This document shows, in pieces, positions 1,649 through 64,000 of a DNA stretch of 64,000 bases. The DNA comes from Thalia democratica (taxonomy: Eukaryota), in NCBI GenBank assembly GCA_965202585.1, contig OZ241829.1, positions 72,726,001-72,790,000 on the forward strand. Direction: 5' to 3'. The stretch's first letter is position 1, and each line of letters starts with the position of its first letter. A program made the translations under genes and the position numbers. The notes beneath the pieces are model-generated. The model saw only the letters and a program-made list of their open reading frames with translations. It had not been told where the DNA came from and did no database searches.

Positions 1649-2204
1649 ATGATAAAACTTCGACTACGTTTTGATGTCAGTTGGAGGAAAATTATTCTGG
1701 GTGTAGCTGGTATATCTGCTACTATTTTTGCATTGCAATATTTCACTTTTAAAAACAATAAACTGAAAGGCTGTTTGATATATGATGTTGTACAAAATAA
1801 AACAGACTCAAAGAAAAACAACAAAATGTCATACGTAGTTTCTGCAAAACCATAAAAATATTATGGATATGTATGTAATTTTTAAGGCTATTATATCTAA
1901 CAGTAGGGATGTATTTAAAACTACTTTGAAAACAATTGGCTTTATGCTGAAGTATATGGATGAAACAGACAAAAATAAAATAATCATTATCTTTAATACA
2001 CTAAGAATATTAAAAAAAGATGACGATGATAATGGGAAGATGTGTTTTAAAATATTGTGTGAATTTGCAAACCAAAATAGTTCTTTAGAAGATGATGCAA
2101 AAAAACTTTTAAAAAGTTACTCAATCTTGTTTGAAAAGTTTAATTACATTAGAATTAATAACTACAAAACTTTTGTTGAAGATAAAAATAAATGCTTGCT
2201 TTAA
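1649..2204 (+). pseudogene. Array copy A1: leader-type gene with a ~1-kb frameshifting internal deletion
   Basis: ORF 1649-1855 carries the family leader and ends at VSAKP*. ORF 1863-2204 is in another frame and matches the C-terminal third of copy 46479 (FMLKYMDE, LFEKF). The junction gcaaaacca|taaaaatattatggatatg joins sequence equivalent to ~46682 and ~47682. Confidence 0.9.
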
Positions 2205-3301
2205 GAAGATACTGATTAAAAAGCGCTTTATGTTAAGTTGTATTTGTTTACATGACTTTAGTTTTCGTGTATCATAATAACATATTTTTGTTATAACTAA
2301 TAAATAAATGCACAAAAGAATGACTTTTTTATAGAATAAGATAGTTAATTCGTTGAAATACTTAAAAGAAATATTTAATAACTTAAAAAATTATTATTAA
2401 CCGAAAGGTTAATTTGAGATTAAATTAAACTCGAAAGTAATATTCAAAGTTTGAAATACTTTTATAAGGTTAAAACAAAACTTAACATTGATGGTAAAAC
2501 TATAATAGATAGTATGTCATAAAATACTAAAATATTAAGATGTAACTTAGACCATACTGAAAAAAGATTTTTTTTTATTTTTTCTAAATGAATTTATACT
2601 TATCACCATAATTGTCTAGTTTTAAGCGCTACACTAAAATAAACGCTAAACAAACTACACATTAACAATTTATTTTAAACCACATTAAAAATGATGGAAA
2701 CAAAACATCTAGAAAAGTTATAATTAATCGATAAAATTAAAGCAAGACAAGTTTTGATTACCAGTTGAATTTTAATTAATTTAACATATTCTAAAATTGA
2801 CTCAATTAGTCTTATTAAAACACAACGGAATTTTAGTTATAAAAGAAAAATAACTACTAATTTTTTGCTTCTAAAGCTTAAAAACAATAATTATTAAAAA
2901 ATATAATTTTAGTTTTTTTAGTTATATCAAAATTTTTATAAAGTAATACATATTCACAGTAAATAGATAATGACTAGTAGTTTATATTTGTATAAGTACA
3001 GCGTACTAATATTGGTGTGAAATACGAATTTATACGGATTTATAATTAGCGTTGTGAAACAAACTACCATGCTTTTCAGCTGTTTGAGTATTTGTTTAAT
3101 GGATATTTATTTATTAATATCCTTATTTTTTATTGATAAATGTATTAACTTATGTTTTATTAAGTATAGTTTGCAATATTAAAATGAACACTGCTTATTT
3201 TATTATTAAAAAAAGCGATATAGTGTTCTTACGACACGTGAAAATACCGGCGTTGGATTTGATAAGTGTCGGCTATATATCCTTGATTATATGGTTTACA
3301 C

Positions 3302-4242
3302 TAGGGATGGGCAACGTACGGCCCGCAGGCCGGATCCGGCCCCCGGAGTCAAAATGACCGGCCCCCAAACCTTTTTTAAATATAAACGGAATCTGGCCTG
3401 CGGACAAAATTTATCCGGCCCGCGAGTGGATGATTCGGCCCGTTAGCCATTTTCAAAATTTATATGAAATCCTACAAGCCAATGTATGTGTTACAAAATT
3501 TGTATAAAACATTTTAAAAATTATTTTCACAAAATAAACTTTAAGACTTTAACCTAAAAACGTTTTTAAAAGTTATTTTTAACTTTTGTAGTAATAAAAA
3601 CACTCTTTTGTTGTAGTACCTTGTTCTGTTTCAAGTAAATTGAATTAATTCTATCACAAATTATCCAAAAACATTGTTTACTGTACTAACTTAGATGATC
3701 TTACCTATCATAATGATTTTCTTAAAAAATGACATGTAAAAAATTGATGTCTTTGCTAGATATGTAGTGAGCTGTTCTTATAAATGTTAAAAAAAGTAGT
3801 ATAATTTCGAATAGTGAAAAACTTTTAATGTTTTAGTTTGAAATCTTAGGCTCGAGAAACTTAATTATTGTTTTTATAAAACAAACTAGTATTAATTCGT
3901 TTCAGAGTTGTAATAAATACAAAATTATGAATACTTTATAAAATTTAACTTAAAGTTTTATACTTAAGAACCTTGGTAATTAAAAAATTGATTAAAAGTT
4001 TTAAAACACCAGATAAATTAGCATCCAGCCAAGTTCAAGTCTTTTGAAGTTTATTCTATTCGGATACGAACCTTGTCTAAAATTAGTATTTAGCCGGATC
4101 TGGATAACATTTTTGAATAAAGATCCGGATTTAAAAAAGGATCCAACTGAATCCGGTAGATCACTTATTCGAAATGCTTCGGCCCGCTAAGGACTAATTT
4201 TTTTAGATCCGGCCCATTAACTATTTACGTTGCCCACCCTTA
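3302..4242. mobile_element. Non-autonomous hAT-type DNA transposon (MITE)
   Basis: 17-bp TIRs TAGGGATGGGCAACGTA / TACGTTGCCCACCCTTA (2 mismatches). 8-bp TSD GTTTACAC (3294-3301) / GTTTACAT (4243-4250). GGCCC and CCGGATCC subterminal motifs. The paralogous site near 51050 is empty. Confidence 0.88.
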
Positions 4243-6317: not shown

Positions 6318-7928
6318 ATGATAAAACTTCGATTAAGTTTTGATTTCAGTTTAAGCAAAGTTATTCTGGGTGTAGCTGGTATATCTGCTACTACTTTTGC
6401 ATTTCAGTATTTCATTTCAAAGAACAATAAATTAAACGGATTGTTAGAAAATTATTTTGGTTTGAAGAAAGGCATTTTAGTGTCAACTTTAGTTTCTTCA
6501 AAAACTTTGGTTGAGCCTGAAATCGGTAAAGATAATTTAGCTAAAAATGAGTTCAAAAACAGCAAAACTGAAAATGATTTAAAATTGTTTACAAGTAAAA
6601 GTAAAAGTGTTTCCCCCCCAGTTGTAAGTAAGGAAGTAATCCGAAAGATAACGGTAAGTAACCGTGAATTCAATTCAAAAAGTGATAAGTCAATACCAAA
6701 ATCTGATCCAAACTGCGAAGAAACTATTTCAAAAACCGAATCAAGCTATGAAAAGTCAGCCTCGAAAATCGACTCAAACTGTGAGAAGTTAGTATCAAAA
6801 ACTGAATTGAACTGTAAAATGCCAATCCCAGAAACTGATTTAGATTGTAGAAAATCAACTTTAAAGTTTGATTTAGACAACACAAACGTTGATGAAGGAA
6901 GTTTAAACCAATTGAAAAACAAAAGTACAGAATTTCATTACAGTAAAGTTTCAAGTGGGTTTAAGAAGATAGGTAACATAAAAGATGGTAGCCAATTTAA
7001 AATGACGGATAAAAATACTGATATGTTTAATAAGAATATTGATATAAACTATAAAAATTCAGTCTCAAAAACTGATACAAACTGCAAAAAGTCTATTTCA
7101 AAGTCTGTCCAAGACAAAACGAATATCAATAAGGAAAGTCAAGACCAATTGTCAATTAAAAGTGTAAAAATTCTTGACAATAAAAATATTATAGGAGCAA
7201 GTGCAAGTACATTAAAGGAGGATTTTCAAACTTTTGAGAAAAAATCTAACGTGCATATTAAAAAAAAGCCTGAAAATAATAAAGTTGAAAAACTTCGTAA
7301 TGAATTAAATGAGCAGTATTTATTTTTTGAGAAGACCTTAAAACTTATAAATGCTGAACAAAAAGCACATGAGAATAATATTGGTCAATTGGAGACAAAT
7401 ATTTCTGTTGCTTCATTGTATAAAGTAATATCAAACCGTAAAAATACAATTTTAGAAAATCTAAATAAACCAAAGGGTAACAGAATTTTGAAACAGTTTT
7501 TTCAAAGTATATTTAGTTTACAGCTAAAGGTTTGGAAAAAAGCGAGTGTATGTTTAAAATACAAAAGTAAATTATCCGATGAAAAAAATGAAAGTATTAA
7601 GGATACGTTTGATAATATAAAAGCTTTATTAGACATATGTGATGATACATTAAAAAACACTTTAAAAAGAATTAATATAGTGCTAAAGTATATTGATGAA
7701 ACTGATAAAATTGAAATAAATAATATTAATAAGTCACTTAATGAGATAAAAATGAATATAATGATGCAGAAGTTGAAAAATACATTCCAAGAGTTAGGAA
7801 AAGAAAATATTATTTTAGATGATGATATAAATGACATTTCAGATAGCTTGAAAAACTTGTTTTGCAAGTACAATCAAGTTTGTTCTAATTTCTACAAAAT
7901 TTTAGCTAAAGGTTTTATCACTAAATAA
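6318..7928 (+). CDS. Array copy B1, intact, 536 aa: signal-anchor leader, 11-aa repeats, 49-aa-type repeat, helical C-terminal domain
   Basis: Uninterrupted ORF. ATG 6318 aligns with the start of all paralogs (the ORF track uses an upstream GTG at 6303). Preceded by AACAG at 6298-6302 and followed by AATAAA at 8076. Confidence 0.88.
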   Translation: MIKLRLSFDFSLSKVILGVAGISATTFAFQYFISKNNKLNGLLENYFGLKKGILVSTLVSSKTLVEPEIGKDNLAKNEFKNSKTENDLKLFTSKSKSVSPPVVSKEVIRKITVSNREFNSKSDKSIPKSDPNCEETISKTESSYEKSASKIDSNCEKLVSKTELNCKMPIPETDLDCRKSTLKFDLDNTNVDEGSLNQLKNKSTEFHYSKVSSGFKKIGNIKDGSQFKMTDKNTDMFNKNIDINYKNSVSKTDTNCKKSISKSVQDKTNINKESQDQLSIKSVKILDNKNIIGASASTLKEDFQTFEKKSNVHIKKKPENNKVEKLRNELNEQYLFFEKTLKLINAEQKAHENNIGQLETNISVASLYKVISNRKNTILENLNKPKGNRILKQFFQSIFSLQLKVWKKASVCLKYKSKLSDEKNESIKDTFDNIKALLDICDDTLKNTLKRINIVLKYIDETDKIEINNINKSLNEIKMNIMMQKLKNTFQELGKENIILDDDINDISDSLKNLFCKYNQVCSNFYKILAKGFITK

Positions 7929-9800: not shown

Positions 9801-11517
9801 ATGATAAAACTTAAATTTTGTTTTGATGTCAGCTTTACCAATGTTATTCTGGGTGTAGCTGGTATATCTACTACAGTTTGTGGATTTCAGTATTTCATTT
9901 TAAACAAAAGTAAGCTAAAAGATTTTTAAAGAACGATATTGTACGGAATAAAACACACTCAGAGAAAGAGAGTAAAGTGTCAAACCTAGTTTCTGCAAAA
10001 CCAACAATTGTGTCAAAACTTAGTAAAAACAAATCAGCTACAGATGCCTTCAAAAACAACAAACCTCAGGTTGGCTTAGATAAGTTTTCAAATAAATATA
10101 AAGGATATATCACTCCTACTAACGAAATCTTTAGAAAGACATCAGATTGTAGAGGTGAATATAACTCAAACTATGAAAAAACAATCTAGAAATCTGATTT
10201 AAACTATGTAGGACTAATTCCTTGAAATATATCATGCAAAGCGAATATTACTGAAGTACGTTTAGGTCAAGTAAAAGATAAAAGCATAAAGGCTCTTGAT
10301 AAGATAGCTGGGATTAGAACTAATGCAACTAATTCTAATGACGATTTACAAACTGTTGAGGAAAAATCTAAAGTAAATATTAAAAAGGAGCCTGTAAAAA
10401 AAGTAAGTCCAGACCAATTGAACGATGAAAGAACTCAGGTTCTTGATAAGGAAAATAGTTTAGAAGCTGATAGAAATACCTCTAATGACGATTTGCAAAA
10501 TGTTGAGGAAACATCAAAAGTAAAAATTGAAAATGAGCCTTTGAATGAAGGAAGATTAGAAAAATTAAAAGATGAAAATGTAAAAGTTCTTGACGAAGGA
10601 GCAAGTTCAGAAGCAGACACAAGTACTACAAGTAATGACGATTTTCAAATGTCAAGGTAAAATATAAAGTGTGTATTAAAAAGAAGCCTATAAATAAAAA
10701 TAGTTCAGACCATTTGATAGATAAAAATATAAAAGTTCTTGGCAAAAATGCTAGATTCAAAAATATTGAAAGTTCTACAAAAGACGGTTTGCAAACTGTT
10801 AAGGTCATACCTTAGGAGAAAAAATAAAAGGATCTGAAAATAGAATAGAACAACTACGTAACGATTTACTTCAACGGCAACAATTTTTTGAGGAGATTCT
10901 TAGATTAATAAAAACTGAAGAGTTTGAACTTGACCAAAACCTCGATCAGCTGAGAAAAGGGACATCAGCAATTTCTTTGTATAAAAAAGTTTGCAATCGT
11001 CAAACTGAAATCCGTGAAAAGAAGACCGATCAAATTTACAATAAAAATATGAAAGATTATTTTAAAGATGTTTGTGATTTAAAGGAAAAAGTATGGAAAG
11101 AAGCGGGTAATAAACCAATACATGCCACTACTTAATTATCAAACAAAAAACAGAAGAATCTCAAGGACAAGTTTGATTGTATACAAGATGTGTTAGAAAA
11201 TTGTGGAGGCTTAGTTGAGCTTTATTTTAAAACAGTTAAGTCTATGGTCGAGTTTATGGAAGTTAATGAATCTAAAACTGAACTTTTTTTTTGAAGTGTC
11301 TGATCATTTTCTTTCTGAAAATGAGGAGTATCAGAAGAAAATTCTCATAATGTTTTGCCGTTTTAAAAATAAATTTAGCTGTGATGCTATATGGTCAACT
11401 TTAGATACTACAAAGAAAAATTTTGGTTGTTTGTTTCGTAAGTTTTACTGTATTTGTAGAAATAGTTATAAGACTTTAGTTGAAGATGAGTATGAAAAAT
11501 ATGATGATAAAAATTAG
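9801..11517 (+). pseudogene. Array copy C1, multiple frameshifts and stops
   Basis: Leader at 9801 ends at TAA 9927-9929 after a 1-nt loss in a T run. Fragments 9977-10189, 10418-10660 and 11215-11517 are colinear with the intact C-type copy at 22844. Four 49-aa-type repeats. Confidence 0.9.
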
Positions 11518-11519
11518 AA

Positions 11520-14494: not shown

Positions 14495-15976
14495 ATGATA
14501 AAATTTCGATTAAGTATTGATGTCAGTTTGAGCAAAGTTATTCTTGGTGTAGCTGGTATATCTGCTACAATTTGTGCATTTCAGTATTTTACTTCGAAGA
14601 AAACAAAACTAAAATGCTCTTCAAACATTGATTTTGTACAAAATGGAATGGAATCACAGATAGCTAACAAAGTGTCGAATTTTATTTCAACAAAACCTAC
14701 CGTTGAGCCCAAAATCACTAAAAACACATCATCTAAAGATGAGCTGAAAAACATAAAAGTTGAAAAAAATTTACTTGCTTACAAAAATAAAGGTTTCAGT
14801 CCAATTGAAGAAGTCGTCAAAAATCCGTCAGTTAGCAAAAGTAAGCCCAAACTATACTGTGAAGAGTTAGTATCGAAAACCGATTCGAAACGTAAAAGGA
14901 AATTACCGAAAACTGAATCAAACTGTGAAAAGTCTATCATAAAAACTTCTCTTAACTGTGATAAGTCAACTTCAAAAAACAAACCACACTGTGAAAAAAC
15001 AACCTTAATATTCGAATCAAAATGTGAAAAATCAATCTCAAAAGTCGACTCAAACTGTGAAAAGCAAATATCAAAAACTAGCTCAACTTATGAAAATACC
15101 ACCTTAAAACCTAATTTTAGTTTTAAAGAAACCATCTCAGAAAATGAATCAGAAATAGTGAATATTGATGAAGTAAGTCCAGGGCAACTGGCTGATAAGA
15201 GTATAAAGCATTCTAGACAACAAGTTAGCTTGGAAGTTAATAGTTTAAATGGTAATTCTCAAACTGATGTAGAAAAAAATAAACTTGAGACTAAAAATCA
15301 AACTGAGTATAAACTTAAAATATTACGTAAAGATTTAAAACAGCTTGAAAGGCTATTGAATCAGATATTTAAACTCATAAAAAAAGAAAAGGATGAACTT
15401 GAGAAAAATCTTGATTTGTTGGAAAAGGGTACATCAGTTGCTAAATTAAATAATAGCATTTGCTATCGACTCGATAAAATCCGTAAAAAGTTGGATGATT
15501 AAAAATGCAATGAGTATTTGAAACAGATTACTTTGAGTTTTTGCAATTTAAAACAATTAGTATGGAAAGTATCAGTAAACAGTTTAAAACATTTTGCTAG
15601 ATTGTCGGATGATAAACATAAAACTACTAGGGAAATGTTTGATTGTATTAAAACTATAATGAACAATTTTGGAGATTTTGTTGGGAATACTTTGAGATCA
15701 ATTAAGTTTATGCTGGAATATATGAACATGAATGTTTCTAAAGCAAACAAGTATTTCAAAACACTTGAAGATCTAAAAGCTTGTGAACTAAAATGTTTTG
15801 AAACATTTTTTAATTATGAAAATTCAAGCCAATATAATATTGTAAAAGACATTGTAATAAAAATAGAAGATAGTTTGAAGGAGTTGATCGATTGCAAAGG
15901 AGTTTTTGAAAGTTATAAAACATTAGTTGGAAATGAATATCAAAAGTATGTTGACAATGAGAAAATTACTGAATAG
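14495..15976 (+). pseudogene. Array copy D1 with a single in-frame TAA at 15500-15502 (335-aa truncated product; 493 codons if read through)
   Basis: ORFs 14495-15502 and 15518-15976 are in the same frame. D1 gat gat TAA aaa tgc aligns with D2 aat aat CGA aaa tgc. No other lesion seen. Confidence 0.85.
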
Positions 15977-18205: not shown

Positions 18206-18399
18206 CGCTGTGTAATGTTAGTAAATTAGTATACTCCAATTTATAAGTTGCTCAATTGTAAAAAAAAATAAGTTTTATTTATCAAAAAGCTTTTGCATGC
18301 TCGTTATTGTTGAAATGACGTAAAATTTAAATTATCTGATTCGCAATTTTTTTTTTATTCCTTTTTGTATTAGAACATAACAAGTTTTTTCTTTATCTT

Positions 18400-20983: not shown

Positions 20984-22843
20984 TTTGGGGTCGGTCGTTT
21001 TATAAGTATCCTTTTATGGGTATCCTAGTTGCAACAAAATGATACCCATAATAAGACCGACCAGAAGGTGTCCTTTTAAAAAATTGTACAATTTTATATT
21101 GATGTTACGTATTTTTTGTTTTTTTTTTTACAATTAAAAATTAAATTGTTTTTACGTATATTTTTTCATAAGTTTATTCAATTTCTTAAACTTAAGTTTA
21201 ATTAAAATGACTTTGATAACTTGTTTAGACTGTTCAGATGTTAAATTTTAAAGTAAACCCATGAAAAGGCGAAACACAGCTTTATAACTTTTTATGGGTA
21301 TCCTTTTAAATTTAGTTTAAATATCTCATATTAACTTTTATTTAAGTTCAAGTTTAACATTAATTAAAGGCTACTTAAGTTAAAAAAATTTTTTTTTTTT
21401 TTAAACTTCTATCAAAACTGCAAAATATAATTCAAGTATTTCTCTAAAAACATAACTAAAAACGAGATATGACTTTATTTACTTTACAAGCACAACTTAG
21501 TTGATAAAGCTAAGGTTTTCCAACTAATAAATTTTTTTTAAATTATATAAACTGCGTTGCCTGACCCCGTAGTAGATTTAGATAATAAACCGCGTTCGTC
21601 GGCTCCACCTAAGAGTCGTGCAGTAGCGTCAGTCGACCGTGACAACAGATCTTATTAATATACCTCAGAAGCTTTAGTTGTATGCTTTATAACTAAATAA
21701 ATGCTGCTTAAAATATAGAGCTTTAACCAAATTATGATTTAAAACTCTTTTAAAATGAATTTATGGTAATTAACTTGCCTGGTAACAATTTTTCAAAGTA
21801 AAACTTTATGCTGATTTAAAAAAAAATCTATAACTAGACTTAATAAATATGTATATTCAAATAATTGTCTTTTACTTACAAACTGTTCTTGTTTATAAAT
21901 TTCAGAAGCTTGAAATGTAAAAAAAATAACAACGTTTAAGAATAAAAGGAATTTATGCATTTCCTCAGATGTAGTTATTTTGCTAGAATTTAAACAAACA
22001 GTAAAATTTTACAAAAACTAGTGGAAAAAAAGTAATTAAATTTGGTCAAAATGACTTAGTTAGTTTTTGTAAAAGTATTTACCTAATTTTAGTTATGTTT
22101 TGTATTACAGACTTTATCATTTTTGTATTAGTTTTTGAATAAACTTAACAAAGTAAGATATATTTATTTAGTTTTGACATTTTATGTATATTAAATTTAC
22201 AAAAATGTCTAATAATAAACTAATTAAACAAATCAAAAAAAATAGTATAACTTTGTTTGCTTGGTAAAATGTTTTTTAACAAAATAAATGCTTGGTTTAG
22301 ATGTTACAACTAAAACTACATAAAGATTGCTTTAAAAATGAAGTGAAAATTCTGAAGTTTCCACTTTATTCCGATTTAACTTAAAATAACTTTTTACTAA
22401 CGAACTGTAACAACTGTATATATTTTAAATAAAATATAGCACATTTTAAGAGGCCTAGCCAAAACTTTTTGCACATTGTAATAGCATTTTATACATAAAC
22501 AACAAACTTTAAAACTTGGCTGAGACATAGATATTTAAATAATTTTTATCATGAAATCATAAAAAAGTATTTCAAATTCTATTTCTCAAAAGATTTTAAA
22601 GGCTTGGCCAGAACTTTTTAAACTAAAGTAGCATTTATCAAGTAACAAATAAGCTCTTATACATATAAAATTTTAAATTGAGCTAAAAGACAAATTTTAA
22701 ACATTTTTAAAGCATTTAAATGAACATAATATACCATAAATAATTTTCTAATAGTAATTTTTTTTAGATTAACTGTATAAACTTTATTACAAACAATTGA
22801 CTAGTATTCTACTTACAGGTTAGTAGTTCGTAAAACTGGTAAA

Positions 22844-24907
22844 ATGATAAAACTTCCTTTAAGTTTTGATATCAGTTTGAGCAAAGTTATTCTGGGTGTA
22901 GCTGGTATATCTGCTACAATTTGTACATCTCAGTATTTCATTTCAACGAACAGCAAGCTAAAAGGCTCTTTAAAGAACGATGTTGTACAAAATAAAACAG
23001 ACTCAAATAAAGACAATAAAGTTTCAAACGTATTTTCCGCCAAACAAACAGTTGAGTCAAAACTCAATAAAGAAAAAACTGCTAGTGATAATTTGAAAAA
23101 CAGCAAACCTAAAAATGGCTTGAGAGTTTGGATCGGAGCTAATGCAAGTACTTCTAATGACGATTGTCAAAATGTTAAGAAAAAGTTCAAAGTGGATATT
23201 TACAAAGAGCTTATAAGTAAAGGAGGACAACATCAATTGAATGATGGAAGAACAAAAGTTTTTAACAAAAAAGCTAGTTTTAAACCTAATGAAAGTACAT
23301 CTAATGACGATTTGTCAACTTTTGAGGAAAGTTCTCAAGTGGATGTTAGAAAAAAGCCTGTAAATGAAGGAAGTCAAAATCAATTAAAAGATGAAAGTAT
23401 AAAAGTTCTTAACCAGGAAATAATTTTAGGTAATAACGCAAGTACTTCTAATGACGACTTGCAAACTGTTGAGGAAAAATCTAAAGTGTATACTAAAAAG
23501 GAGCGTGTAAATGAAGGAAGTCAAGATCAATTTAAAGATGAAAGTATAAAAGTTCTTAATCAGGAAACTAGTTTTGAAGCTAATGCACATACTTCTAATG
23601 AAGACATGCAAACTGTTAAAGAAAAATCTGATGTGAATATTAAAAACGAGACTGTAAATGAAGGAAGTCCAGACCATTTGAAAGATGAAAGTATAGAAGC
23701 TCTTAAGCAGGAAGTTATTTTAGGAGCTAATGCAAGTACTTCTAAAGACGACTTGCAAACTGTTGAGGAAGAGTCTAAAGTGGATATCATAAAGAAACCT
23801 CCTTATAGAGGAATTTTAGACCAATTGAATGAAAAAAATATAAAAGCTCTTGATGATGAAAATAGTTTAAAAGGTAATGCAAATACTTCTAACGATGATT
23901 TGCAAAATGTTGAAGAAAATTCTAATGTGGATATTAAAAACGAGACTGTAAACGAAGGATGTCAAGATCAATTAAAAGACGAAGGTACAAAAGCTGTTGG
24001 TAAAAAATCTAATTTTAAATGTAATGCAAGCTCATCTACTGATTATTTGCAAACTGTTGAGGATAAAACTAAAGTAGGTAATAAAAAGGAGTTTGTAAAT
24101 GAAGAAATTCCAGAGCAAAGTATACAAGTTCTTGGTAATGAAGCTAGTTTAATAGGTAATGTAAGTACTTCTAATGATGATTTGCAAACTGTTAAGGAAA
24201 ACTCTAAGAAGAACAAAAGTAAAACTTCCGATAACAAAATTGGTAAATTTCGTAACGATTTACTTCAGCAGCAACGTTTTTTTGAGGAGACTCTTAAACT
24301 AATAAAAATTGAAGAAAATGAACTCGACCAAAACCTCACTCAGCTGAAAAAGGGAACATCAGCAGTTTCTTTGTATAATAAAGTTTGCAATCGTCAAATT
24401 GAAATCCGTGAAAATAAGACCGACCAAAACTACAATGAAAATATGAAAGCTTATTTTAAAGATGTTTGTGATTTAAAGGAGAAAGTATGGAAAGAAGCGG
24501 GAAATAAACTTATATATGCCACTACTAAGTTATCAAACAAAAAACAAAAAAATCTCAAGGAAAAGTTAGATTGTATTCAAAATGTGTTAGAAAAATGTTG
24601 GGGCTTGGTTGAAATTAATTTGAATACAATTAAATTTTTGCTTGAATATTTGGAAGTTGATGAATCTAAAACAAAACTTTCCTTTGAAATTTCTGATGAT
24701 TTGTACAATGAAAATAAGGAACATCAGAAGAAAATGCACATAATGTTTGATGGTTATGAAAATAAGTTTAGCGGTGATGATTTATGTTCAACTTTAGAAA
24801 CTATAGAGAATAACTTTACTTATTTGTTTGGTAAGTTTTACTTTATTTGTAAAGATAGCTATAAAATTTTAGTTGAAGATGAGTATAAAAAATATGATGA
24901 AAATTAG
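22844..24907 (+). CDS. Array copy C2, intact, 687 aa, with an expanded 49-aa repeat tract
   Basis: Uninterrupted ORF with the family leader and C-terminal domain. TTACAG at 22813-22818 upstream and AATAAA at 25029 downstream. Confidence 0.9.
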   Translation: MIKLPLSFDISLSKVILGVAGISATICTSQYFISTNSKLKGSLKNDVVQNKTDSNKDNKVSNVFSAKQTVESKLNKEKTASDNLKNSKPKNGLRVWIGANASTSNDDCQNVKKKFKVDIYKELISKGGQHQLNDGRTKVFNKKASFKPNESTSNDDLSTFEESSQVDVRKKPVNEGSQNQLKDESIKVLNQEIILGNNASTSNDDLQTVEEKSKVYTKKERVNEGSQDQFKDESIKVLNQETSFEANAHTSNEDMQTVKEKSDVNIKNETVNEGSPDHLKDESIEALKQEVILGANASTSKDDLQTVEEESKVDIIKKPPYRGILDQLNEKNIKALDDENSLKGNANTSNDDLQNVEENSNVDIKNETVNEGCQDQLKDEGTKAVGKKSNFKCNASSSTDYLQTVEDKTKVGNKKEFVNEEIPEQSIQVLGNEASLIGNVSTSNDDLQTVKENSKKNKSKTSDNKIGKFRNDLLQQQRFFEETLKLIKIEENELDQNLTQLKKGTSAVSLYNKVCNRQIEIRENKTDQNYNENMKAYFKDVCDLKEKVWKEAGNKLIYATTKLSNKKQKNLKEKLDCIQNVLEKCWGLVEINLNTIKFLLEYLEVDESKTKLSFEISDDLYNENKEHQKKMHIMFDGYENKFSGDDLCSTLETIENNFTYLFGKFYFICKDSYKILVEDEYKKYDEN
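23132..24205 (+). repeat. Coding tandem repeat, 147-bp/49-aa unit, about 7.5 copies
   Basis: Units of the form NEGSQDQLKDESIKVLNQExxLxxNASTSNDDLQTVEEKSKVDIKKExV read directly from the translation. Confidence 0.92.
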
Positions 24908-46300: not shown

Positions 46301-46478
46301 CTTAAAAATAAACTTTTACAGTTTTATTTTATTTTAAATATTTTTATCGGAAATAAATACTAGCTTACGTCTTTATTTAAAAGTTTTTAAAAGTTTTATC
46401 GTTTTTCTTGTAACGTTTTACTTAAACGAGTTAATTAACAATTTAAATTACAGGTGAGTAGTTAGTGAAGTTAGTAAA

Positions 46479-47894
46479 ATGATAAAAGTTCGATTAAGTT
46501 TTGATGTCAGTTTAAGCAAAGTTATTCTGGGTGTAGCTGGTATATCTGCTACAATTTGTGCATTTCAGTATTTCACTCCAAAGAACAATAAACTAAAAGG
46601 CTATTTGAAATATAATGTTGTACAAAATAAAATAGACTTTAAGAAAGACAATAAAATGTCAAGTTTAGTTTCTGCAAAACCAAACGTTGAGCCCAAACTC
46701 ACTAAGGATAAATCTGCTAAAGATGACACCATAAACAGCAAACCTGAAAACAGCTTAGATAAATTTCAAACTCAAAGTAAAGGCTATATATGTTTTAGTA
46801 AACCAGTCTTCAGAAAAAGATCAAATTCTAAAGGTGAATACAATTTAAACTGTGAAAGATCAATCTCAAAGTCTGATTTAAACTGTAAAAGACAAATCTT
46901 AGAAAAGGAAGCTTACAAAGCGAGTATTAACAAAGAAAGTTTAAACCTATTGGTAGAAAAAAGTGTTAAAGTTCTTAACAAAAATGTTAATTTGAGATCT
47001 AATAAAACTACTTCTGATGACAACTTGCAAGCTATTGGACAAAAATCTAAAATGTGTAGAAAAAACGAGCCTGTTAATGAAAAAAGTCCAGACCAATTAA
47101 AAGAAGAAAATATAAATGTTCTTGATAAGGAAAATAGCTTAGAAGCTGATACAAGTATTTCTAAAGACGATTTGCAAACTATTGAGGAAAAATCTAAAGT
47201 AGATATTAAAAAATTGCTTGTAATTGAAGAAAGCCCAGACCATTTGAACGATGAAGTTATAAAATTTCTTGACAAGAAAGCTAGTACAAAAGGTAATACA
47301 AGTACTTCCAATGATAATTTGCAAACTTATAAAATTAAGCCCAAAGTGGATGATAAAAAGAAGCCTGAAAATAATAAAGTTACAAAACTTCGTAATGATT
47401 TAAATCAGCAGCACAAGTTATTTGTAGACACTTTGAAATTAATAAATGATGAACTAAAAGAGCTGAAGAATGACCTTGGTCAATTGAACAACATTATTTC
47501 CATTGCTTCATTATATAATAAAATATTGAATCGTAAAATGGAAATCCTTGAAATTTTGAATAAACAAAAATGTAATGAACGCTTGAAACAGTTTATCTCA
47601 AATATTTTCAGTATACAGCTAAAAGTTTGGAAAAAAGCCAGTAACCGTTCGATACTTTATGGTAAAAATACTATTGAAAGAAATAAAAACATTATTGATA
47701 TGTTTGCAATTGTAGAGGCTATTTTATCAAATATTAAGGACTTATTTACGACAACTTTAAAAAGAATTAGCTTTATGCTGAAGTATATGGATGAAATAGA
47801 CAAAAACAAAACAATTATTATCTATTATACACTAGAAAAGCTTAAAAAGGATGATGATGAATGTCAAAAGATGTGTTTAAATACATTGCGGTAA
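46479..47894 (+). CDS. Array copy A2, 471 aa, shortened by one premature TAA (homologous frame continues to 48026)
   Basis: cgg TAA ttt gca aac aligns with tgt GAA ttt gca aac in A1. 43 further sense codons (FANLNSSL...SYRILVEDQKK*) match the family C-terminus. Three 49-aa repeats. Confidence 0.75.
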   Translation: MIKVRLSFDVSLSKVILGVAGISATICAFQYFTPKNNKLKGYLKYNVVQNKIDFKKDNKMSSLVSAKPNVEPKLTKDKSAKDDTINSKPENSLDKFQTQSKGYICFSKPVFRKRSNSKGEYNLNCERSISKSDLNCKRQILEKEAYKASINKESLNLLVEKSVKVLNKNVNLRSNKTTSDDNLQAIGQKSKMCRKNEPVNEKSPDQLKEENINVLDKENSLEADTSISKDDLQTIEEKSKVDIKKLLVIEESPDHLNDEVIKFLDKKASTKGNTSTSNDNLQTYKIKPKVDDKKKPENNKVTKLRNDLNQQHKLFVDTLKLINDELKELKNDLGQLNNIISIASLYNKILNRKMEILEILNKQKCNERLKQFISNIFSIQLKVWKKASNRSILYGKNTIERNKNIIDMFAIVEAILSNIKDLFTTTLKRISFMLKYMDEIDKNKTIIIYYTLEKLKKDDDECQKMCLNTLR

Positions 47895-49905
47895 TTTGCA
47901 AACCTAAATAGTTCTTTAAAAGAAGATGTCAATAAATTTTTAGAAAGTTTTTCAAACTTGTTTGAAAAGTTGTATTACATATGTGCTAACAGCTACAGAA
48001 TTTTAGTTGAAGATCAAAAAAAGTAACTATGTTTTATCGTTACGCTCTATGTTAGTTTAGTTTGTTTTCGTTCATACCGTTTAGTTTTGTTTGTTAATTG
48101 ACTTTAGTTTTCGTGTATCATGAAAAAATATTTTTGTATAAATTAATAAATCAATGCACTAAGGTCTGACTTTATATAGTGAAATAAAAATAAATTAATA
48201 TATTATTTCTTAACTAAACATCCAACTTTTTTTAATAAAAGGTAAACATGAACTTAAGTTGAGCAGAAACTTTATCTTTAACATCTAAAATAATGGAAAA
48301 AAACTATAATAAAACTTTTGATAAAATAATATGTCTTAAAAAATATAATATATATAGTAATAATATAAAATAATATGTCTTAATATGTGCTTTAGTTTCT
48401 TAAAGTTAGATGTAAACTTTATAAAAATAAAAATGTAACTTTTTGTATACAGCTATTGAAATAACTTAATAATAACTTAACAACTAATATTAAGTTAGTA
48501 ATCATAGTTTCCGGGTAATCAGTAAGAAGCTCTATTTTAAAATAAACGTTTGGTAAATTACGAAAATAAAACTAAACAGTTTCTCTTAAATCTATATTAA
48601 AAAATGCTGCAAATTAAACATATTAAAAGGTTAAGAAAATAAAATTTTGTTTACCAATTACATTTTAGTAACTTTAATTAAGATTGATTCTACTTGTCTT
48701 GTCAAACAAAAAGGAATTAATGCTTAAATCAAGTAAAAACTATGTTTTGCTTTTAAAATTTCGAAATGATAAATTGTTGAAAACTACTGTAGAAACCTTT
48801 TATATATAAAAAACTTCAGCAAGTAGATAAAACATCTTCGTCTTTAGACTATCGACAGTGGTTTTTATATAAAAAACTTATATTTGTAAAAATTAAATGA
48901 AATTCTACAGTTTATAAAATTGGTGACTAAACTTAAGCTTTTTAATAAAGTTAATATTTATAAAAAAGGGTAATAATAAGATTTGATTAAAAATGTTTCA
49001 AAATATATATTTTATAGCATTTAATTTAAATAACATTATTAATTATGTTAAAATATTATTATAAACTGTTGTGTTACTCTTGTAATTTATTACTCAGTAA
49101 TATTTAAAATCTCCATAATGTTTGTTTCATAATTTAAAAAATAATAATTGAAATACTATCATTTAATAGTATTAGAAGTTGTTCTAAAATAATTTTGCAT
49201 TTAGTTTAAAGCACTTTACTGTTTATAAAGATTCGATACTCAGCAAGTTTTTATACTTTGAAAATTTAATTTCATTGTTTTTAAAAGATCATAACTAGGA
49301 CACTAATAAAAGGATACCCATAAAAAACCTGCCGATTTGTTCGAACACGAACTATTACGTCACAATGAAGACAGTTAACCAGGTATGACCTTTTTAAGTT
49401 GATCGTACGGTTTGCAATATAAACATAAAAATGGTATATAAGTTAATTATATTTTAATCTACAAAATTTTACAAAATTTTTATTTGTTTTTTAAGGTTTT
49501 AGAAAAAAATTCGAAAGGCTGCAGATGTTTATACTCGTGTACATTATATCGTAAGTTTTTAATAATTAAATTATTATTGCAGTTTCATTGAACGGGTTTA
49601 TATTGTTTATTGAGAGATAAAAAAGCGCTTTTATTAACTAAAGAAGAGAAGTTCGGACTAAAGACCTGGTGTACAAAGGAACCTTTCGGTTTTTGAGTCG
49701 TACACCATATACTTGTAACATTTCTTACGAGTTATTGAATTTATTTTTATCATTTAAATATTTAATCTTTAGTAATAAAACAGTCAGTTTAAAAAAAAAA
49801 TTAAATGAATTTTGTGTATAAAAACATACTTAAAACCTTGTTTAGTAAGATAAAAACTAAAAAATAGATATAACTTGAAATCCACTTATTAAAGGAGATA
49901 CACAA

Positions 49906-49995
49906 TACTCATTACTGTTTGAAAAGTTTAATTCCATTATAAGTAATAGCCACAAAACTTTGGTTAAAGAGGAAAAAGAAAATACTTGCACTTAG
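49906..49995 (+). pseudogene. 3'-terminal remnant of a twelfth, A-type copy
   Basis: YSLLFEKFNSIISNSHKTLVKEEKENTCT* aligns with the A1 end YSILFEKFNYIRINNYKTFVEDKNKCLL*. The downstream 50000-52040 is colinear with 2204-5190. Confidence 0.75.
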
Positions 49996-54190: not shown

Positions 54191-55755
54191 ATGATAAAAC
54201 TTCGACTAAGTTTTGATCTCAGTTTGAGCAAAGTTATTCTGGGTGTAACTGGTATATCTGCTACTACTTTTGCATTTCAGTATTTCATTTCAAAGAACAA
54301 TAAACTAAACGGGTTGTTAGAGAATGATTTGAGTTCTAAGAAAGACATTATAGTGTCAAATTTAGTTTCTCCAAAAACTTTGGTTGAGCCTGAAATCGGT
54401 AAAGATAATTTAGCTAAAAATGAGTACAAAAACAGCAAAGCTGAAAATGATTTAAAATTGTTTACAAATGAAAGTAAGAGTGATGCCGTTCCAATTGTCG
54501 GTAAGGAAGTAATCCGAAAAATAACGAATTCAGTTCAAACAGTGATAATTCAATCTCAAATTCTGATCCAAACTGCGAAGAAACTATTTCAAAAACCGAA
54601 TCAAGCTATGAAAAGTCAGCCTCGAAAATCGACTTAAACTGTGTGAAGTTAGTATCAAAAACTGAATTGAATTGTAAAATGCCAAACCCAGAAACTGATT
54701 TAGATTGTAGAAAATCAACTTTAAAGTTTGATATAGACAACACAAACAAAAGTACAGAAATTCTTTGCAGGAAAGTATCAAGTGGGTTTAAGAAGATAGG
54801 TAACATAAAAGATGATATCCAATATAAAATGACGGATAAAAATACTGAATTGTTTGATAAGAATACTGATATAAACTATAAAAATTCAGTCTCAAAAACT
54901 GATTCAAACTACAAAAAGTCTATTTCAAAGTCTTTTCAAGACAAAACGAATATTAATAAGGAAAGTCAAGATCAATTGTCAATTAAAAGTGTAAAAATCC
55001 TTGACAATAAAAATATTATAGGAGCAAATGCAAGTACTTCAAATGAGGGTTTTCAAACTTTTAAGAAAAAATCTAATGTGCATATTAAAAAAAAGCCTGA
55101 AAATAATAAAGTTGTAAAACTTCGTAATGATTTAAATGAGCAGTATGTATTTTTTGAGAAGACCTTAAAACTTATAAATGCTGAACAAAAAGAACATGAA
55201 AATAATATTGGTCAGTTGGAGACAAATATTTCTGTTGCTTCATTGTATAAGGTAATATCAAACCTTAAAAATGCAATTTTAGAAGATCTAAATAAACCAA
55301 AGGGTAACAGAATTTTGAAACAGTTTTTTCAAAGTGTATTTAGTTTACAGCTAAAGGTTTGGAAAAAAGCGAGTGCATGTTTAAAATACAAAAGTAAATT
55401 ATCTGATGAAAAAAATGAAAGTATTAAGGAAACTTTTGATAAAATAAAAGCTTTATTAGACATATGTGATGATACAATAAAAAACACTTTAAAAAGAATT
55501 AATATAGTGCTAAAGTATATTGATGAAACTGATAAAAATGAAATAAATAATATTAATAAGTCACTTAATGAGATAAAAATGAAGATTATGATGCAGAAGT
55601 TGGAAAATACATTTCAAGAGTTAGGAAAAGAAAATATTATTTTAGACGATGATATAAATGACATTTCAGATAGTTTAAAAAACTTATTTTGCAAGTACAA
55701 TCAAGTTTGTTCTAATTTCTACAAAATTGTAGCTAAAGGTTTAATCACTAAATAA
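54191..55755 (+). pseudogene. Array copy B2 with a 13-nt frameshifting deletion
   Basis: B1 ataacg-GTAAGTAACCGTG-aattc versus B2 ataacg-aattc near 54527. The downstream frame 54643-55755 is open. An additional in-frame 33-nt deletion. 17 differences in the last ~223 aa versus B1. Confidence 0.9.
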
Positions 55756-57627: not shown

Positions 57628-59367
57628 ATGATAAAACTTCAAATAAGTTTTAATGTCAGTTTGAGCAAAGTTATTGTAGGTGTAGCTGGTATATCTGCTA
57701 CAGTTTGTGCATTTCAGTATTTCATTTTAAACAAGAGCAAGCTAAAAGGCTTTTTGAAGAACGATGTTGTACGGAATAAAACAGACTCAGAGAAAAAGAG
57801 TAAAGTGTCAAACCTAGTTTCTGCAAACCAACTATTGTGTCAAAACTCAGTAAAATTAGATAAGCTACAGATGACTTAAAAAACAAAAAACCTGAAAATG
57901 ACAAAGATAAGTTTTCAAATAAAAATAAAGGCTATATCACTCCTATTAACGAAATCTATAGAAATACATCAGATTGTAAAGGTGAATATAATTCAAACTA
58001 TGAAAAATCAATCTCAAAATCTGATTTAAACTATGTAGGACCAATTTCTGAAAATAAATCATGCAAAGCGAATATTACTAAAGTGCATTCAGGTCAAGTA
58101 AAAGATAAAAGCATAAACGCTCTTGATAATAAATCTGGGATTGGAGCTAATGCCAGCTATCTTCTAATGACGGTTTACAAACTGTTGAGAAAAAATTTAA
58201 ATTAGATTATAAAAAAGAGCCTGTAAATAAAAAAAGTCTAAACCAATTGAAAGATGAAAGAATTGAGTTTCTTGATAAGGAAATAAGTTTAGATGCTGAT
58301 ATAAGTACGTACCTCTATTGACGATTTGCAAAATGTTGAGGAAAAATCTATTGTAAATGTTGAAAAGGAGCACGTAAATGAAGATATTATAGTACAATTA
58401 AAAGATGAAAATGTAAAAGTTCGTGTCAAAGAAGTTAGTTCAGAAGCTGATACAAGTACTACAAGTACTTCTGGTGACGGTTTTCAAAAAGTATAATAAA
58501 ATGTTAAGGTAAAATATAAAGTTTGTATCAAAAAGAAGCTTGTATGTAAAAAATGTCCAGACTATTTGATAGATGAAAATAAAAAAGTTCTTGGCAAAGA
58601 TGCTAGATTAAAAGGTAATGCAAGTACTCTAAATGACGGTTTGCAAACTGTTAAGGTGAAACCTAAGAAGAATAAAAGAAAAAGATCTGAAAATAAAATA
58701 AATAAGCTTCGTAAAGATTTACTTCAGCAGCAAAGTTTCTTTGAGGAGACTCTTAGATTAATAAAAATTGAAGAAAATGAACTCGATCAAAACCTCGATC
58801 AGCTGAAAAAAGGGACATCAGCAATTTCTTTGTATGATAAAGTTTGCAATCGTTAAATTAAAATCCGTGAAAAGAAGACCGACCTAAATTACAACGAAAA
58901 TATGAAAGCTTATTTTAAAGATGTTTGTGTTTTAAAGGAAAAAGTATAAAAAGAAGCGGGAAAGAAACCAATATATGCCACTACTAAGTTAACAAACAAA
59001 AAACAGAAGAATCTTAAGGAAAATTTTGATTGTATACAAGATGTGTAAGAAAATTGTGGGGGTTTAGTTGATATTGTTTTGAGAAGAATTAGATTTATGC
59101 TTGAATATTTGGAAGTAGATGAACCTAAAACAAAATTTTTCTTTGAAGTGTATGATAATTTGTACATTGAAAATGAGGAATATCAGAAGAAAATTCACAT
59201 AATGTTTTGTGGTTATAAAAATAAATTTAGCAGTGATGCTATATGGTCAACTTTAAATACTATAAAGAATAATTTTGGTTGTTTGTTTTCCAAGTTTTAC
59301 TGTATTTGTAAAACTAGCTACAAGACTTTAGTTGAAGATGTTTAGATAAAATATATGATAAAATTAA
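57628..59367 (+). pseudogene. Array copy C3, multiple frameshifts and stops
   Basis: Leader at 57628 with a 1-nt loss near 57825. In-frame stops replace CAA (cgt TAA att) and TGG (gta TAA aaa). Fragments 58566-58856 and 59079-59345 match C2. Confidence 0.9.
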
Positions 59368-59597
59368 GAATATACTCAATTCAAAACGTTTTTGGTTTGT
59401 TATTTAGCTTTGTTTTTGTTGTTTCTTTTCGTTTTTTACATTGTTTTGTTTTAATAAAAACACTCTTTCGTTATTTTAGTAGTTAAATGCACAATAAACA
59501 TAGATAAATATAATTAGCTTAATTGTTTTAAATATGATCTTGAAAATTTGACTGTCAAAGACTTAATGAGTGTAAATAAATTTAAAATTTACTATAG

Positions 59598-60734: not shown

Positions 60735-63457
60735 TACTATACTGTTGGCTTTAGCACTTATTACATTCCCAAAATTCCAGTTAAATTTAAAGTATTATAA
60801 AATATAAAGATGTTAAAAAATAAGTAACCAGATGAAGGTTGATCTAAAAAACTTAGCTATTGTTACAATAAACCTTTTTACATTAAATAGGCGAATAAAT
60901 CGTTACGTTTTTCAAATGATTATTATGCTTGACAAGTCTTCTTAAAAATCCTTTACGCCTAAATAATAAAATATTCTTTTCAAAATAATTTATTATTTAT
61001 TATTTTAATTTATAAGAACTACATGATTTTAAATTACTACTTGTATAAGAAAAATTATTTCATTAATCCTTTAAAAAATATTTTATGAATAAAAAACCAA
61101 ATGTTTGTTTTCGCAACTTTATGCATAAAGCTCAGTTCTTACTCAATAAAGAAATATTTTAAAATTTGTCTTTATACTTACAATTTATACTAACAATTAC
61201 AACCACGTACTTTAATCTTAAATTGATGAATTAAACGTATGGATGTTATTTAACTAGGTTTCTATATAAATCTGAAGGTAATGTTTAATGAAAAAAAAAA
61301 ACAAAAAAATAGCTATATTTTGCTTAACACTTTTTATTATCTACATTTGTTAAAACAGAAAAAAATATCCTTGAAAATAGTTTTTCTAATTTTTAAAACA
61401 GTTAATTTATTTATGTTTTCGTCAAAACTTTTCACTATATAACACTAATAAAGAGTTTTTCAAATTAATTATAAATAACAAAACCGAAACAGTTAAGATC
61501 TTATAAATATAATAAAATATATGAAGGAGTTTATAAATCAAAATACATGTTTTTTTTACAAATTTTAAATTCTATAACAAAATTAGTAGCAACATCGGTC
61601 AGTTTTGGATTAAGTTACTCAAAAGTAAAAGTAAATGTTGTTATATAATAAGAGAGAAAAAGAAAATAACACTCAAAAAATAATAAAAAATCACAAACAT
61701 ATTACTATCAAAAAAAAAATTATGTTCAGTTTCTGAACGAAATTGACAAAAAATTTATAAAGCTATGGATTAAGACTGAAGAATGCTAAATAAAGTATTT
61801 AAGCTTTTAGAGAAAAATTTTTAACTTAAAATAAACTGTAGAACTATTTTTTAAAATTCAATGGATTTGATAAAATAATTATCTATATCTAAACGTTTTA
61901 AAACTAGGAATCACACCTCAACAGTTTTGTTAAACTGCAGTTTATCATAAAAAACACGACTAAGTTTGAGTAGTTTTGGACAACTATTGCCGTAATCGTA
62001 AACAGTTATGAAAAAATAAAAACAATTACAAATGATACTTAAGCAAATATTGATTAGTTTGTGTACTATGATTATCAATCCTTACAAGTTTTCTAATTAA
62101 AGTTCATAAATATTTTTCTAGCTCTTTTTTATTTTTAAGTTTAAGTTTGTTGTTCAGAACGTAATGGTATTTTGTACCTTTATTTTTTTTTTATATTCTT
62201 TAAGTTCAAATTTTCTGTAAGTGATTCAATTTGTTGGTTATAAGAGTTAAGAATTTATATATTATAACTTTATGTATTACAATTACAAAATTAAGAAAAT
62301 TAAGATATTTCTTATACTTTAATATATGGCCTCTCTGGTAGTTTTTATTTTTAATTTACTTGAAACATTATCAGTTTATAAGTTTCAATAAATATTGAAC
62401 AAGAAACTGCAAGTTGTGATCGTAATACAACGTTATAATTATAATAACATTTTTAAAGCATAAAATTTTTCGGTACTTTTAACCAATATTTTTCAAAAAT
62501 GGTTCAATTGTTGAGATAGAGTTTCATAGTTTAAATTATTTCATTGATTTTTTATCTAATTAACCGATTAAATCAAAACATTTTAACACTTGTACTAGTA
62601 TTCAAACTCTTTAATCTGACTTATAACCTAAAAAATAAAAAAGATAATTAAACTGATATTTAATGTTTGCTGATCATTTACTTATGACAATGTTTTTTTT
62701 AGTATTTCATTTATTATCAAACCCTACATTACTTTTTATCTACGATACTTTTAATTATATAATTTACTTAAAATATGAACTTTTTTTTACAAAACAGCTT
62801 AACAAATTACATTGTAAATAAAAAATCAAAGTTCCATTGTAGTTTAAAAAAAAATTATAATTATTTTGAAGTGTTTTAAACAATTTCATAGACAGACTTA
62901 TCTGATTAATTTTAAATACATACAGAACTGAAATAATAGTATATGCTTCAAACTGTTATAAATTTTATTGAGACTAACTATGTGTTCATAGAACGTATTT
63001 GCTGATTTTAACTAACATTTTACTACTTTTCCGTATTAAAATTATTTTTGAACTATATTTAGTGGCCTTCCCCGAGAAAAGAAAAAAAAAACAGATTTAG
63101 TTTAAGTATTTAACAATGCCTTGAAAACTTTGGTAGATGTTTAAAACTTTTCATTTATTTTAATAAATGGTATTAGATTTATTCATTTTACATTTAATTA
63201 TAAATACTTGTACAAAATACTTTTGTTATAAACGTTCTACAAATTCGTATCACTTATGAAAAGAACTAATGCTTCAAAGTTAATTTCTTTATTAGATAAC
63301 CTATAAACTTATAAAGTTTTATTCAATAAACGATATTTACTGATTTGTAACTAGTCTTTACAACAGTATTCACTAACATGTTTTTAAATCTTATTTACTC
63401 ATAACCTTTTCATTAAGGTTTAAAATTACAAGAAAGTACTTTATTAAAACAGGTAAA

Positions 63458-64000
63458 ATGATAAAACTTCGATTGAGTATTGATGTAAGTTTGAGCAAAG
63501 TTATTCTTGGTGTAGCCGGTATATCTGCTACAATTTGTGCATTTCAATACTTTACTTCGAAGAAAACAAAACTAAAATGCTCTTCAAACACTGATTTTGT
63601 ACAAAATGAAATGGAATCACAGAAAGCCAACAAAGTGGCGATTTTTATTTCAACAAAACCTTACGTTAAGCCCAAAATCACTAAAATCACATCATCTAAA
63701 GACGAGCTGGAAAACAAAAAAGTTGAAAAGAATTTACTTGCTTACAAAAGTAAAGGTGTCAGTCAAGTTGAAGAAGTCGTTAAAAATCCGTCAGTTAGCA
63801 AAAGTAAGCCCAAACTATACTGTGAAGAGTTAGTATCGAAAACCGATCCGAAACATGAAAGGAAATTACCAAAAACTAAATCAAACAGTGAAAAGTCTAT
63901 CATAAAAACTTCTCTTAACTGTGATAAGTCAACCTCAAAAAACGAACAACACTGTGAAAAATTAACCTCAAAAATCGACTCAAAATGTGAAAAGTCAATC
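63458..64000 (+). CDS. Array copy D3, 5' part (181 open codons, runs off the window)
   Basis: Manual translation from ATG 63458 is open to 64000 and matches D1/D2. It is missing from the ORF track because no stop is reached. Confidence 0.85.
   Translation, partial: MIKLRLSIDVSLSKVILGVAGISATICAFQYFTSKKTKLKCSSNTDFVQNEMESQKANKVAIFISTKPYVKPKITKITSSKDELENKKVEKNLLAYKSKGVSQVEEVVKNPSVSKSKPKLYCEELVSKTDPKHERKLPKTKSNSEKSIIKTSLNCDKSTSKNEQHCEKLTSKIDSKCEKSI

Follow-up and report, generated by a model that had tools for sequence, protein, structure and literature searches.

A tandem protein family with a near-invariant leader, a variable repeat stalk and a helical head in the pelagic tunicate Thalia democratica

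What kind of product is encoded by a row of related genes that keep their first codons nearly unchanged, vary in the middle and end in a helical domain? The question is raised by a window of 64,000 nucleotides (nt) of Thalia democratica DNA (assembly GCA_965202585.1, contig OZ241829.1, positions 72,726,001 to 72,790,000 of the forward strand; all positions below are counted within this window), which is gap-free and contains 24% G+C. An earlier note, made from the sequence alone, had described there a twelve-member tandem family composed of an invariant membrane anchor, a variable repeat stalk and a diversifying head. With moderate confidence, we regard the locus as a real, lineage-restricted protein-coding family whose products combine an anchor helix, a stalk of adjustable length and a type-specific binding head, and which evolves by birth and death. 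The family is a genuine new orphan that was previously undescribed; as a tandem array of anchored proteins with stalk and head that turns over by birth and death, it belongs to a familiar general kind.

The array and its proteins

The copies were located by tblastn of the intact and long open reading frames (ORFs) of the window against its whole 64 kb. Eleven leader-bearing copies were found on the + strand only, with leader starts at 1649, 6318, 9801, 14495, 22844, 27773, 36135, 46479, 54191, 57628 and 63458, and tblastn of the intact ORFs gave no minus-strand copy across the window. The twelfth member is a leaderless head scrap at 49906-49980 with a weak protein match (tblastn E 0.08), supported by DNA likeness (2118-3271 against 49906-51024, 72%); it is the probable counterpart of the remnant that the earlier note had listed beside 11 starts. 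That count and the common strand were thus recovered by tblastn and self-comparison, and the three copies called clearly intact, at 6318-7928, 22844-24907 and 27773-29323, stand in the ORF list. The array contains five sequence types (A, B, D, E and F).

1649..2204, + strand: E-type remnant, leader 1649-1852 fused to the last ~115 head codons (1851-2204), with an ORF at 1863-2204
6318..7928, + strand: A-type, intact, 536 amino acids from the conserved ATG (ORF list)
9801..11517, + strand: B-type pseudogene, interrupted by a stop at codon 42 and by at least four frame changes
14495..15976, + strand: D-type, open but for a single in-frame TAA at 15500-15502 (ORFs, tblastn)
22813..22843, + strand: example of the upstream motif, TTACAG (read from the sequence)
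22844..24907, + strand: B-type, intact, 687 amino acids (ORF list)
27773..29323, + strand: D-type, intact, 516 amino acids (ORF list, AlphaFold)
36135..37240, + strand: F-type, decayed: codon 42 is a stop, the reading frame changes and the head is cut short
46479..48026, + strand: E-type, open but for a single in-frame TAA at 47892-47894 (ORFs)
49906..49980, + strand: leaderless head scrap, last ~25 codons (weak tblastn match, DNA similarity)
54191..55755, + strand: A-type, frameshifted by a 13-nt deletion near 54526 (ORFs, tblastn)
57628..59357, + strand: B-type pseudogene, one frame change and ten in-frame stops ahead of its own terminal stop
63458..64000, + strand: D-type, open for 181 codons to the window end (tblastn)

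Three of the twelve members are intact, eight are visibly broken when the scrap is counted, and one is cut by the window end; the many pseudogenes across the array, with their in-frame stops, frame changes and deletions, bear out the high turnover that had been proposed. An internal deletion has removed the stalk and the greater part of the head from the E-type remnant at 1649, whose DNA is homologous to two separate parts of the other E-type copy in the self-comparison (860-1852 to 45677-46682, and 1852-2327 to 47683-48173). The frameshifted A-type copy at 54191 has also lost one 33-nt repeat, and its head ORF (54643-55755) remains open. For the intact A-type copy, the program-listed ORF begins at an upstream GTG (6303). 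In the two copies interrupted by a single TAA (15500-15502 and 47892-47894), the stop marks either a very recent knock-out, a null allele or a mistake of the assembly, and the frameshifts and stops of the array at large could likewise stem in part from null alleles or misassembly. Coverage by runs X1-X3 is even across genes and spacers and DNA-like. X3, whose label names another organism, also has the locus, at a lower share of sampled words (0.12) and with more differences per contig (about 5-8 per 100 letters in the listed pieces).

The single architecture claimed for all members, in which a near-invariant N-terminal hydrophobic module is followed by repeats forming a stalk of variable length and then by a helical head, is supported by alignment, by the repeats and by AlphaFold. 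The coding sequence of each gene is a single exon. Ten full-length members could be aligned, with 27-39% identity to the first sequence; the columns L17, G18, V19, A20, I22, A24, T25 and Q30 are invariant among them, and M1, K3, L12, K14, V15, G21, S23, C27, A28 and Y31 nearly so. The N-terminal module has 33 residues and opens with a 12-residue alternation of hydrophobic and polar residues (residues 2-13, MIKLRLSFDVSL), after which come a helix of moderate hydrophobicity with many small residues, VILGVAGISAT(I/V)CAFQYF, and a Lys-rich flank. In the intact D-type copy at 27773, this leader corresponds to codons 1-33 and the head to about codons 277-516. For the full-length protein of this copy, AlphaFold predicts a helix at residues 11-36, an unstructured stretch at 37-276 with a predicted local distance difference test score (pLDDT) of about 25, and a helical head; modelled alone, the head is predicted as a bundle of seven helices and ~220 residues (pLDDT 84, predicted template modelling score 0.77). 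Every leader-bearing protein in the searches run also has this head.

The stalk comprises 230-430 residues, is predicted to be disordered and is rich in Lys, Ser, Asn and Glu, with a net charge that ranges by type from +15 to -10. Its repeats have units of 33 nt (11 amino acids, with one Cys each) and/or 147 nt (49 amino acids). The 147-nt unit is present 2.5 times in the B-type pseudogene at 9801 (10334-10699) and 6.7 times in the intact B-type copy (23137-24118), and the 33-nt single-Cys unit 6.7 times in the intact D-type copy (28186-28407); in the D-type copy at 14495 the 33-nt repeats span 14909-15079. The number of units of both lengths differs from paralogue to paralogue, in keeping with the variability ascribed to the stalk.

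About 25-30 nt before the ATG, most copies and the metagenomic relatives L003 and L004 carry the motif TTACAG, of which TTACTG in the relative L002 and TTACAAG in the D-type copies are variants. Judged by its sequence and position, TTACAG probably acts as a 3' splice acceptor, for cis- or spliced-leader splicing, ahead of a short 5' untranslated region. Several copies have an in-frame TGA between the acceptor-like AG and the conserved ATG, and because of it the ATG can be taken as the start codon; an upstream coding exon is excluded by the same in-frame stop in these copies.

Self-comparison of the window resolves most of the array into repeated blocks. The stretch 5199-11747 matches 53075-59597 (87%), 10274-16561 matches 23681-29944 (80%), both 11737-15037 and 25120-28315 match 60732-64000 (about 82%), and 860-5189 matches 45677-52063 (68-74%). 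Since these blocks take in several genes plus spacers, the array has expanded by segmental duplication of a multi-gene unit, and the window therefore amounts to about three copies of an older E, A, B, D unit together with a lone F-type copy. The five subtypes of the earlier note agree with the duplication blocks, and A, B, D and E, the types included in the head tree (F was left out), are recovered as clades. In this maximum-likelihood tree D, B and A/E form separate, well-supported clades, each with metagenomic members, and a deeper clade holds metagenome members only. The types are thus old, as the metagenomic members in each clade indicate, and the recent copies young, with a within-type synonymous divergence (dS) of about 0.1-0.25. 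On a birth-and-death view, a long-established set of four or more head types would have been block-copied about three times, and most of the copied members would now be decaying. Upstream of a B-type gene from the metagenomes, the DNA (L003:301-789) is 80% identical to a repeated spacer element of the window at 18563-19043 (also 19399-19858), a likeness that reflects either a conserved neighbourhood or a shared dispersed repeat.

Selection on the head, the stalk and the leader

The ratio of nonsynonymous to synonymous divergence (dN/dS) was estimated by the Nei-Gojobori method with bootstrap, which in AT-rich DNA is, if anything, conservative. Head ratios are 0.32 in the A pair, 0.44-0.50 in the D pairs and 0.37-0.44 between types, and the comparison of two intact B-type genes, the copy at 22844 and the metagenomic L002, gave 0.49 (confidence interval 0.30-0.77). 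The 95% confidence interval lies below 1 in all eight head comparisons. Stalk ratios are 0.59-0.84, and in close pairs their intervals reach across 1. Selection on the heads is therefore moderately purifying, and the stalk evolves close to neutrality. The head was expected to be diversifying; with dN/dS of 0.32-0.50, it is instead the best-conserved part of the protein after the leader. Chance ORFs are ruled out because stops are frequent at 24% G+C, yet ORFs of 516-687 codons persist and head dN/dS is below 1.

Nor does the tail of the D-type head, previously called hypervariable, carry a mark of positive selection. Over the last ~60 codons of the copy at 27773 (29141-29320), dS is 0.42-0.46 and dN 0.28 against the two other D-type copies, which agree with each other over this part; at 29154-29231, the assembly is contradicted at 11 sites or more by short-read contigs from the same organism, and depth dips. 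As dS is raised together with dN, this looks like a replaced or highly polymorphic tract, or a very divergent allele, rather than the outcome of positive selection.

The one unusual feature of the family is a leader whose silent sites, too, are frozen. In comparisons between types, dS amounts to 0.05-0.21 over codons 1-33 and 0.64-1.55 (about 1.2) over stalk and head; third-position identity in the leader is 0.86, and the leader is near frozen while other parts are only 20-35% identical among members. The conserved block starts at -3 and keeps 84-90% identity to about +87, beyond which identity is 76% at +88 to +117 and falls until about +270, and the 300 nt upstream of the ATG are only 29-57% identical. 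Against the most divergent relative, L004, the proportion of nonsynonymous differences in the leader (pN 0.10) is lower than that of synonymous ones (pS 0.32-0.42), and therefore constraint at the protein level is real. To account for the further conservation of silent sites within the genome, gene conversion or a nucleotide-level constraint is required. Any conversion was not very recent, since the D-type leaders keep type-specific changes. An RNAalifold analysis of -30 to +120 in 13 copies found no covariation (energy -8.3 kcal/mol), which leaves an RNA-structure account of the silent sites without support. The leader bin has a summed contig depth about seven times that of its neighbours in X1 and X2; such depth is not copy number, and it hints at many more leader-bearing copies elsewhere.

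It is a long shot that the leader, with synonymous sites 5-10 times less diverged, is a constant tag preserved in its nucleotides as well as in its protein, on a large family of membrane-tethered recognition proteins, for a tunicate-specific self/non-self or gamete recognition. If true, the tag could serve family-wide control, such as single-copy choice, small-RNA regulation or co-translational mRNA targeting, and the recognition family of these chain-forming animals would probably be much larger than the window.

Relatives and the search for a known fold

An exhaustive profile hidden Markov model (HMM) search of 1.8 billion representative proteins returned 42 matches, and the members looked up were all ENA-only entries without a name. 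Word-indexed profile and leader-only searches added three further members and no new head type. The relatives total about 45 fragments from marine metagenome assemblies in ENA, and every contig looked up belongs to Tara Oceans. P0004, P0052 and P0053 are intact and full-length, whereas L001 (a stop after the leader) and L004 (a frameshift) are broken. Two scans of the JGI metagenomes and a search of IMG/VR revealed no relatives.

With four window proteins and seven relatives as queries, Pfam yielded sub-threshold noise only, and a PDB sequence profile search no meaningful match. Fold searches with the head (PDB, AFDB clusters, Swiss-Prot models, BFVD, the ESM Atlas and a wide VIA-align search) produced no significant match and returned only generic helical-bundle or BAR-like likenesses; with Foldseek every E-value was above 0.01 (at or above 0.016). 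The Atlas feature search scored far below a usable level, both for the head (best SPACA9, 0.51) and for residues 1-60, where the leads were weak and mixed (best named Peroxin-3, 0.59). Rfam and tRNA scans of the window found nothing. The absence of a recognisable domain is thus upheld by the Pfam, PDB sequence and fold searches, and the HMM and AlphaFold/Foldseek checks that the earlier note had proposed led only to unnamed marine metagenome relatives and no significant fold. A match to a housekeeping family or a transposon ORF, which that note had named as the result that would count against its case, did not appear in the Pfam, PDB or fold searches.

The best structural match of the head is to the PhoU/UPF0111-like bundles, with 3l39_A at Z 11.6 over 165 residues, other PhoU chains at Z 9.6-10 and a PhoU_div cluster of the Atlas at a template modelling score of 0.55. 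These Z values lie below the noise level of ~13 that the tool states for helical bundles, and sequence identity is 11% for 3l39_A and 5-9% for the other PhoU chains, without a profile or Pfam PhoU match. Membership of the PhoU-like fold was rejected on these grounds and on the Foldseek E-values of at least 0.016, and the modelled likeness would at most represent a shared helix arrangement. Readings as a BAR domain, an alpha-pore-forming toxin (AhlC, PaxB, Cry domain I; Z 7.7-9.7) or a talin rod were set aside as common helix arrangements; a long hydrophobic hairpin is absent from the head. No transposase, reverse transcriptase, integrase or viral family was matched by the proteins in Pfam, and the BFVD fold search gave nothing significant. 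An ORF encoded by a transposon or virus was rejected for lack of a Pfam match, for its absence from IMG/VR and because the copies lie within segmental duplications.

Membrane address and competing explanations

Judging from its sequence features, the product is most likely a membrane-tethered or membrane-targeted binding protein. The best hydrophobic 19-mer has a moderate Kyte-Doolittle value of 1.6-2.2 and starts at residue 10-15; the N-terminal flank carries a net charge of +0 to +2, to which the amino terminus adds, and the 12 residues after the helix include 2-4 Lys/Arg. In the explanation that we prefer, the N-terminal helix would insert in the membrane and be retained as an anchor, and its invariant small-residue face (G18, A20, G21, S23, A24 and T25) may pack on a common partner helix. 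The stalk would serve as a spacer of adjustable length and the head as a type-specific binding domain.

We lean, weakly, toward a head that would be cytosolic on an organelle membrane, i.e. the endoplasmic reticulum (ER), the mitochondrial outer membrane or the peroxisome, rather than outside the cell. The pointers in this direction are weak: no Cys column is conserved among 17 heads and the two semi-conserved positions never co-occur, the stalk is Lys-rich and Pro-poor, unlike the mucin type, and N-x-S/T sequons are about as frequent as expected. Lys/Glu-rich, Pro-poor disorder is more typical of intracellular regions. A comparable layout is that of the ER proteins RRBP1 (p180) and kinectin, in which an N-terminal anchor is followed by basic, variable tandem repeats and a cytosolic alpha-helical C-terminus. 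On this general description, the family resembles them in its putative anchor, its variable short-repeat region and its helical C-terminal part. It differs from them in having no Pfam match to their domains, in its compact seven-helix head rather than a long coiled coil, and in being a tandem multigene family with pseudogenes and single-exon coding sequences.

Several observations weigh against the anchored-protein explanation. The invariance of the leader may in part reflect conversion or nucleotide constraint and not helix packing, and the flank charges give no single orientation across types. The Cys counts of the three intact heads are even (4, 6 and 8), as disulfide pairing gives, every 11-amino-acid stalk repeat contains one Cys, and a cleavage site such as ICA/F (the stroke marking the cut) would fit a signal peptide. 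No RNA run was seen to contain the gene, and X6, possibly an RNA run of the same sample, has essentially no cover over 25000-30900. With only three copies intact, the array as a whole may be disappearing.

The same leader segment is compatible with a signal peptide of ~28 residues or an ER anchor. It is accordingly possible, if less probable than retention as an anchor, that the family is secreted or surface-exposed, the leader being cleaved after about residue 28 (at ICA/F) and the stalk and head exported, for example as a component of mucus, net or tunic, in which the single-Cys 11-amino-acid repeats could cross-link, or as a humoral recognition factor. Besides the Cys pattern given above, the moderately hydrophobic N-terminal stretch with small residues at -3/-1 suits this explanation, and so does a conserved block that opens at the ATG and has a dS of 0.05-0.2 against about 1.2 elsewhere. 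Signals that are conserved even at silent sites ahead of a faster-evolving mature part are known from cone-snail toxin superfamilies and from antimicrobial peptides of molluscs and frogs. Conserved signal peptides in variable secreted families are described in, for example, PMC5577615 and PMC10138031. The family shares with the conotoxin, mussel myticalin/CRP-I and frog skin peptide families an N-terminal segment far more conserved than the rest, silent sites included (dS 0.05-0.21 against 0.64-1.55), as well as a tandem array with presence/absence and pseudogene turnover. In contrast to them, the proteins here are large (450-690 amino acids), and their mature part is under purifying selection: dN/dS does not exceed 1 in head (0.32-0.50) or stalk (0.59-0.84), and the 17 heads have no invariant Cys and hence no conserved Cys framework. 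Export is further disfavoured by an n-region that is 14 residues long and itself conserved, by conservation that runs about 60 residues beyond any cleavage site, and by a stalk more like intracellular disorder.

A narrower address on the mitochondrial outer membrane, with an anchor of the Tom20/Tom70 type, a cytosolic head and a role in genetic conflict (e.g. in the germline or in mitochondrial inheritance), is a subset of the preferred explanation rather than exclusive of it, and we consider it unlikely. Signal-anchored proteins of that membrane lack a cleavable presequence. The signal-anchor criteria given in PMC4010795 are a single N-terminal transmembrane domain, moderate hydrophobicity and a C-terminal flank with at least three basic residues; moderate hydrophobicity, for which that source cites a Wimley-White cut-off below 0.4 (Lee et al. 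2011), is regarded there as too ambiguous. The leader seems compatible with the three, at least in part. A single N-terminal helix of moderate hydrophobicity is predicted, and the 12 residues after it contain four basic residues in the D-type, three in the E-type, three in P0004 and four in P0054, whereas the A-type, the B-type and P0037 have only two, the net charge of the A-type being +1. The variable, seemingly unpaired head Cys also fit a cytosolic head. Like the class of Tom20, Tom70 and OM45, the family appears to have one N-terminal, moderately hydrophobic small-residue helix, a basic flank and its bulk on the C-terminal side; unlike that class, it is otherwise unrelated in sequence and fold, its helix begins at residue 15 behind a conserved 14-residue segment, and the flank of the A-type is weak. 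The criteria are admittedly non-specific (PMC4010795), and the Atlas search of residues 1-60 was weak and mixed. A conflict-driven function would be conjecture, and the genes give no sign of positive selection.

That the array is simply dying or non-functional, a once-useful family or a set of mobile or viral ORFs that are now uniformly decaying and unexpressed, is very improbable: eight broken members of twelve, often-broken relatives (L001, L004) and the next to absent cover in X6, the possible RNA run, are outweighed by purifying selection on the heads, including that between two intact genes, by the intact relatives P0004, P0052 and P0053, by ORFs of 516-687 codons in 24% G+C DNA, by copies that neither contain nor adjoin a transposon or viral domain, by the lack of relatives in IMG/VR, and by the position of the copies inside large segmental duplications rather than as discrete insertions.

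Other elements of the window lie among these genes. A cold-shock domain (PF00313, E 1e-14) is encoded in an isolated 102-codon frame on the minus strand at 17869-18174, between family copies. Tandem 40-41-nt units occur at 30516-30900 and 32144-32324 (CCGGATCCGG...GGATTCTAATTTGAAAAAAAAGT); their summed short-read contig depth of 1e5-1e6, against about 400 nearby, marks them as a very high-copy genome repeat. The long inter-copy spacer also holds tandem 33/57-nt units at 43242-43383, each with the palindrome TGACGTCA, a CRE-like site. A 15-nt minisatellite, CCTGCTCGAGTTTTT, present in about 30 copies at 38313-38760, has the highest G+C content in the window and gives spurious ORFs on both strands.

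Pelagic tunicate genomes are barely annotated, and the family contributes to them a protein domain not described before and a clear example of birth and death. The locus holds intact, one-mutation-away and long-dead copies side by side, which makes it a good one for following turnover between individuals. If the copies are not expressed, the family is an ordinary decaying array; if the heads are organelle-surface adaptors or recognition receptors, it would be a lineage-specific invention.

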